NCBI RefSeq assembly: GCF_964204645.1
Contig: NC_134036.1
Span: forward strand, 1,302,001 to 1,366,000
Reading direction: 5' to 3'
Source: Tubulanus polymorphus
Taxonomy: Eukaryota > Animalia > Nemertea
DNA: 64,000 bases
Numbering within the stretch: the first letter of the stretch is position 1; each line of letters begins with the position of its first letter. Shown one piece after another: positions 17,249 through 62,180 of the stretch. The notes below the pieces were generated by a model. It was not told the DNA's origin and made no database searches. It worked only from the letters and a program-made list of their open reading frames with translations. The translations under genes and the position numbers were made by a program.

Positions 17249-20200
17249 ATGTACCATGAAAGAAACATCTTTCGTTTTTTGCTCTTGTTCATTCTATGTT
17301 TATTCATCAGAAACACATCGGGTGAGTTTAATCAAAATCCACTGGTTCCAGAGTTGTTAAAATGTAGAAATTATTAATCTGCTATGATGACAAACCCTAA
17401 AGGCAAGCCCAGAAAGGTGCCATCAGGATCTAAGCCAATCGTTGTTGCGGGTGGAAAGCTCAGAGAAGAACTACAGAAAGAAACTATGTCACTGTCACGA
17501 TTCAAACTATCAATTGTCGGGGTTGGAGAGCTCGGAGAAGAACAATATTTGGATGTTTCAAATAATCTTGTTTTTTATTTTGTCATTTCAGCAAAATGTT
17601 TTGGGAAGAGTTGTATTGGTTGGGAGTGTCATTGCAGTACGCCCCAAAATAAATGTCCAATAAGGGACCCAGAAAGCGCTTTAACATGTCAAACTCCTGG
17701 TACCTGTGAGTCTGCATTTTGGACTGGACCAGCTTGTCAAATCGGTAAGTTTCCTGTATTAACTGTTTCTGCTCCAGTAAAACGAGGTCAAATATCACTG
17801 AACCTCGGATTTATCTCAGATTAACGGATTAACTCAATATTTCGTGCGAAACGGCTCTCATTGAAATGCCCATATAAGGGAAAACGGAAATAGATCCAGG
17901 AATTGCCGTGACTAAAGGTGACACTAATCCGTATACGGATTAACGTCACTAATCCATAAGCGGGAAAAAATCTATTAGTAAAAATATCATAGATTTATGA
18001 AATATCTGGGAACTGTCGACGAACTGAGATCAACTCTAATTATTTCATCGAGTAAAGAAAAAAAAATGTTAGTTTTGTTTAATTCTAGTTGAAATTGTGA
18101 AATAACTTTGAATCAATTTGTGTTTGTTCGTTTTGAAAATTCGTGAAATAATTTAAATCTTCTATTCACAAAATGTGTTTTGTAGGAAACGTGGCTCGTG
18201 GTAAAACAGTTACAATGTCATCCACTCACTCACCCGCTATTAAATGTACAGATGGTCAGACGGTAACAAGTGGTGGTCGTGAAATATGTCACACTAATTT
18301 GGATCAAGACGCCTGGATTAGAATTGATCTCGGAACTCAATACGTGGTACATGAAGTTACACTTTGGGATAGAACAGACGCGACGAGCTGCGACCAGCCG
18401 TGGAGTGAGTACATATTATCATTTTTGATATCATTTATTATTTAGAAACCCTACAGACACCACTGAGGTCACATTTATACTCAACTTTATCAAAAGTAAA
18501 TCAACCAAGGAATATAACTTTGAACTCGAAAAGATTTTTTGAGAATATAGTTTAATCAACCGATTTTCAGACTGTAAATTTGGAATTTACTTTTTCAGTC
18601 GAAAACAATTGGTTTTTACATCTGATGCAATCACGAAATTCTTCCTTGAACTTTCCTCTATTTTATGCTCGATTTCTTTATTTCAAAAATGTACGTATAA
18701 TTCATTTTGAAGGTTCTCTATTTTTTTCTTTTCTCAGAAAAACGCGCGCGCAACCTGGAGATTCGAGTCGGAAATAACCCGAGTATTTTTACATCTAACC
18801 AGAAATGTGCTTACCATGGCCCCGCTCTCTGCGGAACACATAAAACATTAGCATGCAGCCCAGGTCCTATAGTTGGTCGATACGTCACCGTTCAACACAA
18901 GAACATTAGTAAGGCAGAGTATCTCAACCTGGCAGAAATAGAAGTTATCGGGTTCAAATATATCGGTTAGTTTTGCGATTGGAACTGAGAGAGTATGAAC
19001 AAGATTATCAATTTAGAAAGGAATATTCAGTGAATTTTTAATGAGAATTTACCTAACAAATTTGAACGAATAAGTTGTATTTTTGAAATAAGAACTCCTT
19101 TTTACGTGTCACGTGTAACCGTTATTTCTGTTCAACGAATATTAGTTTTTTGTATCACCATTAGATTTCTGTTTTAAATTTCTGTTTAGCACCCGGTGAT
19201 TGTAGTAAGGGATCGAACTCATTTGGATGTATGATTGAATGTAGATGTAACAACAATAGTGAAAGTTGTGACTATTTGAGTGGTATCTGTCAATCTGGCT
19301 GTTCACAGAATTACATCGGAAAGTGGTGCGAGTCAGGTATATTACACTGAATCATAGATTCCTGGGAATCTCACTCCTTATTCCCTGAATATATTAACCA
19401 ATATGAATCGGAAAAGATACCAATTGAAAATGACCGAAAGTAAAGGATCCTTACCCTTCATTTTATTTGATTTACCTGCAATCAACATCGATTTATTTTT
19501 TAGAATTGAAGTTGTTTTCGAATTTGACAAAATCTGCGCTGACAGATAACAGTGTTAATGTCAGTTGGACAGCTTACTCGGGTTCTGTAGTAGATTCAGG
19601 ACGTGGTACTGTCAGCGTTCAGTATCAAGTCGTTTATCGTAAGATATCAGAAAACACTTGGACTAATCAGGAATCTGCAGGAGTCCTTACACATCACACA
19701 ATTACTGGTTTAACTCCTAATACCGAGTATAAGATAGCTGTTAGTCTACAGAAATTAGTTAACAGTCAACTTATATCAACTGCGAGTCAAACTAGTCCAA
19801 TACTAAATATACAGACTTTGTGTGCAGGTAAAAACCCTTCATTCTTATAAACTCTTAAATCACCAATTCAAACACAGAATTGTGTTAAACATGTTTGTTT
19901 TACTGTAGTTCTATTAAACAGTGCTAAAGATGTTCGTGTGGTGCTGCCGTCACCAAGAAGATGTCGATTCGTATTTTATAAGTAATTTGTCTGTCGTGTC
20001 ATTTCAGTACCAGGACCTCCCGCTTCTCTTGACTTCTCATTCACAAAAGATACATTGAAAACTACATTGACATGGACCGCACCAAACAGTCCAAATTGTG
20101 ACTTCATCAATTATCGGGTAGGAATTAACTGGTCCTGATCGGTAGAGGGCACCACCTGCGCTATACTGTAACGTGTCCCTATCTGTTTTCAGCTCACGTG

Positions 20201-59900: not shown

Positions 59901-62180
59901 CTCCGGCAGTGGTTCATTTCCTATCGATTACAAAGGTAATGATCATACTCTTGTTTTACCATGGCACCTAGTGTGACCTATATAAGTGCTGATATATGTG
60001 ATTTCAAAACGACTTCACTCGAGACATACGTGTAGACATCGATATGACAACATTTTATGATGAGGTTTTGTTTCGATGTAACATTGTTTGACATCAGTAT
60101 TGTCTATGACCAGTCTCTCCCGATGAGTAACTTGAGATTTATTTCATAGCGTGGCCACAAACAAGCACATTATCTACTAGTGTTTCACTATCGAGGATGG
60201 CCGGATCATGGTGTACCGTTCCCGGCTTCATCTGTTGTTCGTATGCAACAGTTCATCAAACAGCGTCTTACTGACCCGGATCAGGGACTTGTGCTGATTC
60301 ATGGCAGGTAAATTAATTCGAAAATCTTCCAGTCCTTTACCGTTAAGGAGACGTGTAGAAATGTTATTGTTTGTGTTGTGTTCTCAGTGCTGGTGCTGGA
60401 AGGACAGGTTGTTATATCGCAACGGAGCAGCTTCTTGAAAAAGCTAAGAAAGATGGACTCGTTAACGTATTCGACATGTTTAGGAAATTACGACAACAAA
60501 GACCAGGAATGATCCAAAATATGGTAAACCTGTAGTAACTGTCTCTCATTTCACGCTTCCAAAATCCAAAACTTCTCCAACATGTTGTTTGACTATCTAC
60601 TTTAGAAACAGTACATTCTCGTGCACCAGATTCTACTGGAGGAACTGGTACTGGGACCGGTGGCGTTCCCGACCACGAGTTTCAGAGAATCATACGAGGA
60701 AAAAAAAGCAACGCGTCCTGTATCTAGAAACGTGTCTGATAAAATAGAGGAACAATTTCTAGTACGTATTAAGATCGGCCAAAACTAGACGAAGGGTTCG
60801 ATCCTGGCACAAAGTTAGGATGGCAACAATAAAATCAATGACCAAATCGTGTTTCCAAATAGTTTCTCCTTGTTTTTGAGGAAACAATTTTTTCAATGAG
60901 ATTCTATTAATACAGGTATTGAAGGCATCGACTCCGATTCAGGATGAGGAATCACTAGCAGTGGCCAAACTACTCAACAATGTTTACAAGTCCCGATACA
61001 AAGACATCCTTCCCGAGGCACAGTATCAACCGCAACTGTCACATAAAGGGTTCATTAATGCTTCATTTGTGCACGTGAGTTTGATTCTGATTTAATAGCC
61101 ATCCGTAGAATATCCGGGCAGTTTTAGCAGATAGATAATGATAGATTAAAAAAAGATAGATCGATAATTTGCGAAAATCTAATAAGAAGACTTACCTTTT
61201 TACAGACGATCACAGATGCATACCTGTTTATAGCTACACAAAGTCCTCTACAAAAGACAATTAATGATTTCTGGCAAATGATCTTTAAATATAACTGTGA
61301 ACTTATCGTAATGATGCATCAAGAATATCCACAAGATCCGGTAAGGCTTATTCTTAAGTGCAGTACTACCTTATCTTGATATCTCATAAAATACATTTTC
61401 TGATTTCAGACATATGCAAGCTATTGGCCTGGAGTTGGAAGTATCAAATTCGGTCCTTTTACGATCACTGTGGAGGAAGTTTCATTGCCCTGTAAGACCA
61501 TCGTTCGTCGGGATTTGATCCTCCAAAAACAGAATGTATGTTGACTTTTTTTTCGGTAGCTACTTTTCAGAGAAAGATGGCTGCATTTTTCTAAATTTCC
61601 TTTGGCATTGCTATTTACTATGACCTTATTGTTTCTGTAAACGGTATATGTTATATTTCACTACAGGAATCGCGTCGGATTCGTCAGATCCAGTTTTTAG
61701 GATGGCCTGAGGATGAGTCAGTTCCTGATTTACAATATCTATTCGAGTTTGTGAATTTAGTTACAAGAGAACACGTCACAAGTCCTATCGTTGTACACTG
61801 CATGTTCGTATCTTAGCAACAACAGTCAATTATTCAGAAAACATATTCTATAACAATATCACAATATAAAAAGATTATGCAAATTTTACAGGGACAGCAC
61901 AACGAGAGCAGGGCTATTTTGTGCGGCATTTGAATTGATCTCCAAGGCGCCATCTAGTGAACAAATCGACGTTTATCACTGCATACAAAAACTACGAATG
62001 ACTCGACCTCAATTCATTCCAAATTTGGTATGAAATTAATTTCGAAATGTTCTAAAAAAGAAGTGATAGTGTCAATCATTGATAAATCTTTTTTCGTTAT
62101 TATAGGAACAATACAAGTTGCTGCATGACCTTGTGATATTCATCTTCCACGGATTCGACACTTATATGACCCTTAATTAG
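50974..62180 (+). CDS. Gene D: long-form F-type lectin receptor PTP-like pseudophosphatase (SP-EGF-FTL-EGF-FN3x6-MPD-TM-D1-D2)
   Basis: SP MYRERNIFRFSLLL; FTL exons from ~51851 and 52750; six FN3 domains at 53523-56529; RRKR site; [25 protein letters not shown] (~57204-57272). D1 [11 protein letters not shown] (GGC at 60303-60305), D2 VHCMDSTTR, ends DTYMTLN*. Confidence 0.88.
51085..51290. repeat. 72-bp x ~3 intronic tandem repeat (gene D intron 1)
   Basis: AAACTCTGTC units start at 51085, 51157 and 51229. One to 1.5 copies occur in intron 1 of genes A and C. Confidence 0.92.
54489..54620. repeat. Interrupted (TA)n microsatellite
   Basis: TA-rich run in the gene D intron that corresponds to the AT-tract intron of gene B. 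Confidence 0.9.
57387..58408. mobile_element. Helitron/Helentron-like non-autonomous element with (GTCC)n and ~150-bp internal tandem repeats
   Basis: ~1-kb insertion in the post-TM intron of gene D that is absent from A and B. (GTCC)n at ~57430-57453, three ~150-bp repeats at ~57918, 58066 and 58220, and a 3' CCTAGT end. Confidence 0.6.

Follow-up and report, generated by a model that had tools for sequence, protein, structure and literature searches.

A tandem array of F-type-lectin-headed receptor tyrosine phosphatases with a Cys-to-Gly substitution in D1 in the nemertean Tubulanus polymorphus

Work on receptor tyrosine phosphatases is hampered by ligands that are for the most part unknown. 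Their 'dead' domains received no attention for a long time. The locus described here raises the question of what kind of receptor combines a lectin head with phosphatase domains, and whether such a family might serve in recognition. The window, a stretch of 64,000 nucleotides, is Tubulanus polymorphus chromosome DNA, and genes A, B, and D are the exact placement of RefSeq proteins (Table 1). The first-pass annotation described four head-to-tail paralogues in the window, in which a lectin (1/2/0/1 copies) is joined through a stalk and a transmembrane (TM) segment to two PTP domains, and proposed the cluster as a candidate glycan-recognition immune or allorecognition locus.

Table 1. Coordinates of the genes and domain features in the window
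Feature	Position	Strand	Description
Gene A	17249..25840	+	27 coding exons; RefSeq XP_074661394.1 (P0185, 1672 aa), exact map, GT..AG introns
Gene A F-type lectin	18186..18965	+	two exons, 18186-18404 and 18738-18965
Gene A TM exon	20974..21122	+	P0185 hydrophobic run, exon map
Gene A 75-bp repeat array	21380..22455	+	14.3 copies, in-frame, inside exon 21246-22468
Gene A D1 active-site codon GGC	23938..23940	+	Gly at PTP nucleophile Cys position
Gene A D2 P-loop Cys codon	25473..25475	+	VVHC-M-DSTTRTG over junction 25477/25552
Gene B	30165..41377	+	34 coding exons; RefSeq XP_074661385.1 (P0175, 1827 aa), exact map
Gene B lectin 1	31047..32016	+	exons 31047-31271, 31774-32016
(AT)117 tract in gene B intron	33683..33916	.	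at boundary of internal cassette duplication
Gene B lectin 2	34624..35579	+	exons 34624-34848, 35340-35579
Gene B TM exon	37669-37814	+	RefSeq map
Gene B D1 Gly codon	39516..39518	+	splice 39520/39595 = CAT GGC AG/T GCT GGT = HGSAG
Copy C	43225..48646	+	truncated copy
Copy C D1 Gly codon	46711-46713	+	
Gene D	50974..62180	+	33 coding exons; RefSeq XP_074661534.1 (P0154, 1758 aa), exact map
Gene D lectin	51851-52063 and 52750-52989	+	sole lectin of gene D
Gene D TM exon	57129-57274	+	
Gene D D1 Gly codon	60303-60305	+	

All four copies lie on the + strand as described, with a DNA identity of 72-92%, introns counted. The cluster is larger than four: the array contains 11 tandem genes, reaching 105 kb past the window. 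The whole family has about 22 genes, and a threshold of 70% identity yields 27 lectin exons in the genome, adjoining PTP exon clusters. The array is a recombination mosaic among paralogues, with blocks of 96-99% identity; paralogues B, F, I, and J are 96% identical across the 3' 5 kb. Differences seen in DNA runs are inseparable from contigs of these 96%-identical paralogues. Haplotype or assembly duplicates were ruled out as the source of the four copies, because these differ by 8-28% in DNA and are too divergent for such an origin. The family consists of lineage-specific, tandemly expanding type-I receptors. No published description of an F-type-lectin/PTP receptor combination was found in the literature searched, in agreement with the earlier remark that this is not a characterised family; the genes had already been modelled in RefSeq as RPTP kappa/T-like.

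Domain order was examined by running Pfam both on individual exons and on the exactly mapping RefSeq proteins. The order is F5_F8_type_C_2 / F5_F8_type_C, fn3, Fn3_PTPRU / PTP_tm, TM, and two Y_phosphatase domains. Genes A, B, and D encode type-I TM proteins with tandem D1-D2, and the proposed receptor layout holds for these three; copy C does not amount to an intact receptor. The exon map and Pfam bear out the numbers of lectin domains (1/2/0/1 in A/B/C/D) and of FN3 domains (2 in A, 4 in B, 6 in D), which shift through cassette duplication. The gene A protein starts with a signal peptide, an 8-Cys module, one F-type lectin, another 8-Cys module, and the FN3 pair; there follow a PTPRU-type juxtamembrane domain, the TM segment, a YxN array, D1, and D2 (Pfam). 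Apart from the YxN array, genes B and D follow this layout with their own lectin and FN3 numbers. Gene B has two cassettes (8-Cys, lectin, 8-Cys, FN3) within its FN3 total, followed by TM, D1, and D2; an internal 2.7-kb cassette duplication relates 30356-33053 to 33918-36625 at 92.7% identity. Gene D has an extra cassette at 53918-55896, and D2 follows D1. The modules that had been called EGF gave no Pfam or PDB sequence match; they are 8-Cys modules, EGF-like by cysteine pattern only. MAM (PF00629) and Ig domains are absent by Pfam in P0185, P0175, P0154, and P0017, whereas PF00629 is present in all vertebrate matches of the cytoplasmic half.

The cytoplasmic Tyr motifs also vary in number: the juxtamembrane region of A has 17 YxN motifs, against 2 for B and none for D. 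The 17 motifs of gene A are encoded by its repeat array, which is predicted to be coding in both RefSeq isoforms. Through this 75-bp minisatellite, some 16 docking sites of the pYxN type (Grb2-SH2 consensus) might have been added to gene A. The YxN array is confined to gene A, and YxN scaffolding is not a family property.

Copy C keeps the signal exon (~43225-43297), the last-FN3 exons (~44511-44907), and intact cytoplasmic exons. Its lectin, juxtamembrane, and TM exons are absent at the locus, so it does not encode a type-I TM protein; its Cys-rich exon has a premature stop at 43685-43687, and its RefSeq CDS covers only 46079-48646, a cytoplasmic product of 483 aa starting inside D1. These features of copy C would suit a cluster of decaying pseudogenes or assembly duplicates. 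As an account of the locus this is extremely improbable: the exons of A, B, and D (27-34 per gene) are intact and bounded by canonical splice sites, spliced RNA exists, the PTP-domain omega is ~0.25, and the copies show the DNA divergence given above. For A, B, and D, such a reading is largely refuted.

Absence of spliced transcripts had been named as grounds for rejecting the proposal, and spliced RNA contigs were found. In gene B, 12 junctions are present as GT..AG joints in RNA contigs of run X3, including the lectin 2 junction 34848>35340. The RNA joint 39517>39592 (cut +3; loose end GGTTCATGG) is the gene B HG splice. These contigs match at 95% or above, and could stem from B or from paralogue F, I, or J.

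The receptors were proposed to be pseudophosphatases. In phosphatase domain D1, Cys is replaced by Gly in the DNA of all four copies, and the HG junction appears in spliced RNA. In gene A, the exon with this codon runs to 23942 and is joined to the one beginning at 24023, so that the protein reads VHG/SAGAGRTG. The signature (I/V)HCxAGxGR(S/T)G with its nucleophile Cys was found in none of the 11 array genes. Since the D1 codon is GGC in both DNA and spliced RNA, D1 is no cysteine-dependent phosphatase. All 11 genes of the array have the HG form, as do four more proteins, and HG was also seen in the gene at 2.51 Mb; the HC form is kept in three paralogues (cluster I) about 1 Mb away. The outgroups in the phylogenetic trees were vertebrate PTPRK/T and a T. 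polymorphus RPTP that has no lectin. The HG genes form a monophyletic clade (support 100/99), with the HC clade as its sister group. The HG clade has at least 15 genes, 11 of them in this array, against 3 HC genes. D1 retains the WPD loop, the P-loop Arg, and the Q-loop. Its omega is 0.24-0.30 with no relaxation. The pattern is STYX-like: the catalytic Cys is replaced, the pocket is otherwise kept, and selection is maintained.

The proteins might still be enzymes, either via D2, in which CX5R is retained, or by a non-cysteine mechanism. D2 has HC...R and the Q-loop in all copies, and is also under purifying selection (~0.3). However, WPE replaces WPD in D2, and its P-loop (HCMDSTTRTG) carries an Asp and lacks the conserved glycines. 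The D2 of R2B phosphatases, which is inactive, looks similar (HCLNGGGRSG), and the active-type paralogues carry the same D2 as the HG genes. An enzymatic role is considered very unlikely.

The lectin domains were compared with sequences of solved structures (phmmer, PDB), and the best matches were fucolectins, 3CQO (1.7e-13) and 1K12 (4.9e-8). An AF2 model of P0185:70-230 has a pLDDT of 88 and a pTM of 0.86; F-type lectin domains fill all of the top 11 places among its Foldseek PDB matches (3LE0, 1K12, 3CQO, 2J1R, and others; TM-score 0.68-0.80). The AF2 model, Foldseek, and phmmer agree on the F-type jelly-roll fold. The H-x26-R-x-D signature noted earlier is invariant in 16/16 aligned lectin domains, and the sugar triad of gene A is His111, Arg138, and Arg151 (P0185 numbering). 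A third basic residue lies 10-15 residues past the Asp, versus 4 in the motif H-X24/26-R-X-D-X4-(R/K); at least 90% of the 30 F-type domains in the alignment carry this conserved Arg, which aligns with Arg86 of the eel lectin AAA. The cation-binding motif hhDGx is represented by a conserved K-C-T-D-G-Q/R/K, which aligns with AIDGN of 1K12; in the alignment, the Asp reaches at least 90% and the Gly is invariant. The T. polymorphus lectins also lack the vicinal Cys-Cys that the eel lectin has. Their fucose motif is non-canonical, and fucose may not be the ligand. On the preferred reading, the ectodomains would differ in the fucosylated or related glycans that they bind.

The idea of a variable sensor on a constant signalling tail is supported by pairwise dN/dS, which is 0.79 in the lectin, versus 0.24 in D1 and 0.29 in D2. 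The M2a-vs-M1a likelihood-ratio statistic was 111 for the lectin (60.5, p 7e-14, with ungapped columns only) and 17.7 for FN3-1; it was 1.07 for D1 and 0 for D2, and D1, D2, the juxtamembrane domain, and the last FN3 were not significant. These values come from a self-written implementation in which branch lengths could vary only by a scale factor; recombination among the paralogues is clear, and it can inflate site-model tests. Sites under selection lie next to the sugar-binding His and in loops whose eel-lectin counterparts are CDR1/CDR2. The pN is 0.20-0.40 in CDR-equivalent segments versus 0.06 elsewhere, and pN/pS by segment is 0.85-1.3, reaching 2.3 in the four residues after the His. 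The lectin framework and triad are invariant, and the neighbouring loops are variable. The codon tests support positive selection in the lectin loops that flank the sugar-binding triad.

Ordinary developmental or adhesion RPTPs, with an ectodomain that merely relaxed after duplication, might give a similar picture, if misaligned loops and gene conversion had produced the selection signal. The whole-domain lectin omega is indeed below 1, the CDR-equivalent pN/pS is about 1 except in the four post-His residues, and the array is a mosaic. This explanation is judged unlikely: the lectin signal persists when only ungapped columns are used, the identical analysis gives no signal in D1, D2, or the juxtamembrane domain, and framework and triad stay fixed while adjoining loops vary.

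The explanation that best fits the whole, and which we hold to be moderately probable, is an R2B-like, lectin-headed family that has lost the D1 Cys, with diversifying heads and a tail that traps or scaffolds. Where R2B-type receptors have a MAM-Ig head, these have one or two F-type lectin domains instead. The D1 nucleophile was lost in a single ancestral Cys-to-Gly change, after which the clade with this change expanded. The tail would not dephosphorylate; D1 keeps the WPD loop, the P-loop Arg, and the Q-loop, and may on that account be a natural substrate trap or a scaffold that binds phosphotyrosine. The HG receptors would work against the active HC-type paralogues or compete with them, on the model of PTPRU versus PTPRK, and of STYX among dual-specificity phosphatases. 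Judged from these comparisons, phosphotyrosine scaffolding by the family is plausible.

What the receptors recognise is a separate matter. An 11-gene array of TM receptors with lectin-loop selection between paralogues has the form of invertebrate recognition loci, i.e. clustered TM receptors with a diversifying ectodomain. The heads might read microbial or conspecific glycans, and the array might be an innate-immune pattern-recognition or allorecognition locus, a polymorphic recognition complex. The tandem expansion with recent segmental duplications and the positive selection in ligand-facing loops are consistent with this; the similar-headed HC and HG receptors resemble paired inhibitory/activating immune receptors, and F-type lectins work in self/non-self recognition in many animals (PMC5712786). 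However, the signal of selection comes from comparing paralogues with one another, not alleles. We also know of no allorecognition phenotype described in nemerteans, a further point against. Such a locus is possible but somewhat doubtful, and the immune or allorecognition role first proposed for the array is speculation.

Gamete recognition fits as well as immunity. In oyster bindin, positive selection is clustered on the fucose pocket, and F-lectin repeats vary from 1 to 5 through recombination (PMC5712786). Because this gamete-recognition protein shows the same pattern of pocket-clustered selection and varying domain number as the array, the evolutionary signature is not specific to immunity. 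The lectin heads of gamete or cell-cell recognition receptors might co-evolve with egg-coat or cell-surface glycans, like sperm bindin. Bindin, however, is a secreted acrosomal protein without a phosphatase tail, not a receptor, and we regard this role as improbable. There is also a low probability of a paired-receptor system built on phosphatases, not on ITIM/ITAM tails, in which active HC receptors (3) would be set against dead, substrate-trapping HG receptors (~18), both with similar, rapidly diversifying heads for glycan binding. If this were true, one glycan ligand class would either erase or protect phosphotyrosine signals, and the family would be a nemertean system of self/non-self or gamete recognition with an evolutionary origin separate from all known ones.

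To our knowledge, no recognition or immune receptor has been characterised in the phylum Nemertea, and this is its first candidate diversifying receptor family. The family is a natural experiment: the lectin head is recognisable, with a specificity readable on glycan arrays, and active (Cys) and inactive (Gly) versions are found in one genome, the inactive one having expanded and stayed under selection. Since both versions coexist and the lectin ligand is readable, trapping or shielding of phosphotyrosine by receptor pseudophosphatases is directly testable.

Among known systems, the R2B PTPs (PTPRK, PTPRT, PTPRM, PTPRU) are similar in several features. The best non-Tubulanus match of the cytoplasmic half is PTPRK/PTPRT (32-35% identity, 97% coverage); the membrane-proximal domain matches Pfam Fn3_PTPRU; and FN3 repeats, a long cytoplasmic juxtamembrane region, tandem D1-D2, and a D2 P-loop of the HC(L/M)(N/D).. 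type are shared. The differences are the head, an 8-Cys module plus F-type lectin(s) with no MAM or Ig found, and the Gly of the HG-clade D1. PTPRU is a human receptor pseudophosphatase with both PTP domains inactive; it binds the substrates of an active paralogue (Hay et al. 2020, PMC7320164), with which it is proposed to compete (PMC7320164). The HG/HC pair invites the same reading. However, PTPRU is a single gene that keeps its Cys and is inactive by structural rearrangements, whereas the HG family is a multigene expansion with the nucleophile replaced and the other motifs kept. STYX, a phospho-binding regulator, has a natural Gly for the active-site Cys in an otherwise conserved signature (PMC8269279). 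The substitution in the HG-clade D1 is the same; STYX is of the small cytosolic dual-specificity type, whereas HG is a classical receptor PTP domain.

The F-type lectins, such as eel AAA (1K12) and striped bass FBP32 (3CQO), have the fold, the His-Arg-Arg triad, and the DG cation motif in common with the T. polymorphus domains, and variability and indels are likewise concentrated in CDR loops. The T. polymorphus domains differ in a stretch from Arg-x-Asp to the third basic residue that is at least 6 residues longer, and in the missing vicinal disulfide. Drosophila furrowed shows that an F-lectin protein can be membrane-anchored (PMC5712786). None of the F-type lectin architectures listed in PMC5712786 has a PTP domain; the T. 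polymorphus receptors add PTP to the domain partners of the F-type lectin family.

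The candidate cluster at 17249-62180 extends from the start codon of gene A to the stop codon of gene D. DNA self-comparison identified four units on the + strand, which share 72-92% identity with introns counted. The reading of these units as assembly or haplotype duplicates, raised in the first-pass annotation, was rejected at this divergence of 8-28%; copies A-D are therefore real paralogues, not haplotigs. A pseudogene reading was also rejected for A, B, and D. Pfam analysis of exons and proteins gave the domain order: signal peptide, 8-Cys module, F5_F8_type_C_2 / F5_F8_type_C, 8-Cys module, fn3 repeats, Fn3_PTPRU / PTP_tm, TM, and two Y_phosphatase domains (D1 and D2). 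The FN3 numbers (two in A, four in B, and six in D) and lectin numbers (one in A, two in B, and one in D, with no lectin exon in C) agreed with those first proposed. The two 8-Cys modules, previously called EGF, had no match by Pfam or PDB sequence search; the label thus describes a cysteine pattern only. The second lectin of gene B is evidently the product of a 2.7-kb internal duplication, with an intronic (AT)117 tract at its junction. The 72-bp minisatellite in intron 1 is open in several frames, yet the RefSeq models remove it by splicing.

Coordinates of the receptor genes and of associated features (window positions, or G000:C12 positions on contig NC_134036.1)
Feature	Position	Strand	Description
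Gene A	17249-25837	+	RefSeq XP_074661394.1 (P0185), 1672 aa, 27 exons, exact map, canonical introns
Gene B	30165-41374	+	RefSeq XP_074661385.1 (P0175), 1827 aa, 34 exons, exact map, canonical introns
Gene D	50974-62177	+	RefSeq XP_074661534.1 (P0154), 1758 aa, 33 exons, exact map, canonical introns
Internal duplication, gene B	30356-33053 vs 33918-36625		92.7% identical
Stop in copy C	43685-43687		ends Cys-rich exon
Gene A repeat exon	21246-22468		75-bp unit x 14.3 copies, 90% alike, no indels
Minisatellite, intron 1	51085-51291 (gene D); also ~17400-17660, ~43320-43580		72-bp unit, 2.9 copies in D
Tandem repeat, gene D	57916-58341		149-bp x 2.8; long intron, TM exon to first cytoplasmic exon
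Intronless ORF	12501-13442	+	313 aa, rhodopsin-family GPCR match (7tm_1, E 1.7e-15), 4 kb upstream of gene A
Uninterrupted ORF	9625-11193	-	521 aa; no Pfam match
Tandem copies	15092-16730		~4 copies, unit ~410 bp, 91-92% identical, just upstream of gene A promoter region
Conserved ~1-kb block	26300-27340, 41648-42620, 63060-63881		88-95% identical, downstream of A, B, D; belongs to duplication unit
Open frame adjoining ~1-kb block	27430-27660		Ig-like by eye; no Pfam match
Array block pair, 11 kb	G000:C12:1383598-1394650 vs 1439996-1451038		98.9% identical
Array block pair, 6.8 kb	G000:C12:1367522-1374301 vs 1454494-1461279		99.4% identical
P0161/P0184	G000:C12:313000-319100	-	lectin + FN3 repeats + TM, without PTP domains; 1163-1180 aa

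Copy C does not encode a complete receptor. Its signal exon, last FN3, and all cytoplasmic exons are retained; the lectin, juxtamembrane, and TM exons are missing, nothing in C corresponds to 20371-21167 of gene A, and a premature end is set in the Cys-rich exon. The RefSeq product has 483 aa only and starts inside D1. Four head-to-tail receptor paralogues had been claimed; the order holds for all four, but the receptor layout is intact in A, B, and D only. Pairwise omega in the PTP exons of copy C was 0.24-0.41, with no visible relaxation. Therefore, either the truncation is recent or the product is used.

In D1 of A, B, C, and D, the signature is V-H-G|S-A-G-A-G-R-T-G over a phase-2 intron, with GGC at the codon of the nucleophile Cys (HG type; the HC type keeps the Cys). 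The WPDHGVP motif, the P-loop Arg, and the Q-loop are all retained. D2 contains HCMDSTTR(T/A)G, with WPE, and is similar to the inactive D2 of the R2B phosphatases. D1 of A-D is unable to use cysteine catalysis, yet it is conserved.

Contigs of four sequencing runs (X1-X4) were matched to the gene B region. The X3 contigs on 34500-40100 contained at least 12 GT..AG joints, all equal to RefSeq junctions of gene B, including the lectin exon joint 34848>35340 and the catalytic joint 39520|39595 (CAT GGC AG|T GCT). Such joints were absent from X1, X2, and X4, which behave as DNA; splicing was found in X3 alone. The 3' 5 kb of gene B is 96-96.5% identical to the paralogues F, I, and J, and because this exceeds the 95% threshold of contig matching, the X3 contigs are assignable to B or these near-copies. 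They prove expression of gene B or of F, I, or J, all of the HG type; it is for B or these near-copies that spliced RNA, first proposed as a check, was seen, HG junction included.

The lectin sequence matched the solved F-type lectins FBP32 (3CQO, 1.7e-13) and eel agglutinin (1K12, 4.9e-8), as well as lectinolysin and pneumococcal fucose modules. An AlphaFold model built from 30 aligned domains (pLDDT 88, pTM 0.86) was searched with Foldseek, and the top 11 structures were exclusively F-type lectins (TM-scores 0.68-0.80). His111 and Arg138 of the H-x26-R-x-D motif are invariant in 16 of the 16 family domains aligned, and likewise the DG cation motif; the fucolectin-type assignment was thus confirmed. 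In the published F-type lectin motif, the third basic residue stands 4 residues past the Asp (PMC5712786). The conserved Arg151, which aligns with eel lectin Arg86, stands 10 or more residues past it, and the vicinal disulfide is missing from the family domains. Judged by alignment, the fit to this motif is incomplete, and the ligand may be other than plain fucose.

Codon alignments of the exact CDSs of 12 genes showed a difference between the lectin and the PTP domains, as the first-pass annotation had held for diversifying lectin loops and constant phosphatase exons. The lectin sites with posterior >0.8 fall in three places: the CDR1-side loop that follows GKTVxMSS; the loop directly before the sugar-binding His, aligned with eel lectin CDR2 residues 44-47; and three residues past this His. 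In lectin segments predefined from the eel-lectin alignment, pN was 0.20-0.40 and pN/pS 0.85-2.3, compared with 0.06 and 0.49 in the remaining domain. At the sequence level, these analyses show an apparently glycan-type head with a conserved core and a diversifying rim. Across the copies, head and stalk change modularly.

Selection by partition (pairwise Nei-Gojobori dN/dS, ratio of means; M2a vs M1a from our own M0/M1a/M2a likelihood script on an IQ-TREE tree per partition, with branch lengths scaled by one factor but otherwise fixed; recombination occurs in the array and can inflate site tests)
Partition	dN/dS	LRT	Result
Lectin	0.79	111 (all columns)	omega2 7.5, 9% of sites
Lectin, ungapped columns only		60.5	p 7e-14
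First FN3	0.93	17.7	p 1.5e-4
8-Cys module 2	0.59		
8-Cys module 1	0.45	4.8	not significant
Last FN3	0.51	3.8	not significant
Juxtamembrane domain	0.34	0.3	not significant
D1	0.24	1.07	not significant
D2	0.29	0	not significant

The number of cytoplasmic Tyr motifs also differs among the copies, as had been noticed. The juxtamembrane region of gene A (524 aa) contains 17 YxN motifs, compared with 0-2 in the paralogues (145-176 aa), and the array is restricted to gene A. Its exon is present in both predicted RefSeq isoforms. The pYxN motif is the Grb2-SH2 consensus.

Genome-wide counts were taken from the 268-Mb assembly, in which the window is G000:C12:1302001-1366000, with single exons or database proteins as queries; exons were joined solely to check their identity with these proteins and to make the codon alignments. 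The array runs 105 kb past the window and comprises 11 tandem genes (A to K), all of the HG type (11/11). Blocks of genes F and J (11 kb, 98.9% identical) and of genes E and K (6.8 kb, 99.4% identical) match closely, which points to very recent segmental duplication, or possibly to a collapsed or expanded assembly. HG was also found in a gene at C12:2.51 Mb and in P0153, P0155, P0159, and P0186, the RefSeq proteins from which the copies at C12:1.07-1.12 Mb, C9, C10, and C57 were judged. HC is kept in three genes at C12:270-310 kb. One of them encodes P0017 (XP_074661320.1, named 'receptor-type tyrosine-protein phosphatase kappa-like' by NCBI), which was found with one lectin exon and maps exactly (33/33 exons) ~1 Mb upstream of the window on the same contig. 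As P0017 is a T. polymorphus protein, this exact map assigns the genome to that palaeonemertean. P0161/P0184 (RefSeq 'RPTP delta-like') are a tail-less, decoy-like form adjoining the HC-type genes. In total, 27 lectin exons of at least 70% identity adjoin PTP exon clusters, corresponding to ~22 genes.

In the cytoplasmic-region tree, the HG proteins group together in a single clade with support of 100/99, and the HC pair is its sister group. The next branches out are the lectin-less T. polymorphus RPTP P0187 and then vertebrate PTPRK/T, the closest foreign matches (32-35% identity). The simplest history is fusion of a lectin head to an R2B-like RPTP, then a single Cys-to-Gly change, and then expansion of the Gly clade. 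P0187, the closest lectin-less RPTP, lies on the same chromosome outside the window. Its D1 P-loop is VHCSSGCGWTG, with Trp for the invariant Arg of CX5R; in this lineage, D1 seems to have lost its active site a second time, independently of the HG change.

The combination of lectin and PTP had been thought not to be a characterised family, and the literature searched contained no description of an F-type lectin or fucolectin joined to a tyrosine phosphatase. The partners in an F-type lectin review are CTL, pentraxin, CCP, TM, and FA58C, with PTP not among them (PMC5712786). The architecture search first suggested was approached in three ways. When the lectin exon was run exhaustively with HMMER, P0017 alone among the best 150 of 992 matches had a PTP signature. 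In word-based searches, one with P0017 and one with the cytoplasmic half as query, both domains occurred together only in T. polymorphus proteins, although other nemertean proteomes may be absent from the databases. RefSeq already contains models of these genes, generically named, and every component is of a known kind. The family is a fresh combination of known components, not a new category.

The evolutionary signature would be compatible with each of immunity, allorecognition, and gamete recognition; that of oyster bindin, in fertilisation, is alike (PMC5712786). Ligand binding or clustering might bring to its targets a D1 that binds phosphotyrosine without hydrolysing it. D1 would then shield or scaffold these targets, opposing the active (HC) paralogues. 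The same opposing role was proposed for PTPRU and PTPRK (PMC7320164). The Gly-for-Cys change is common to the HG family and STYX, in which it yields a phospho-binding regulator (PMC8269279).
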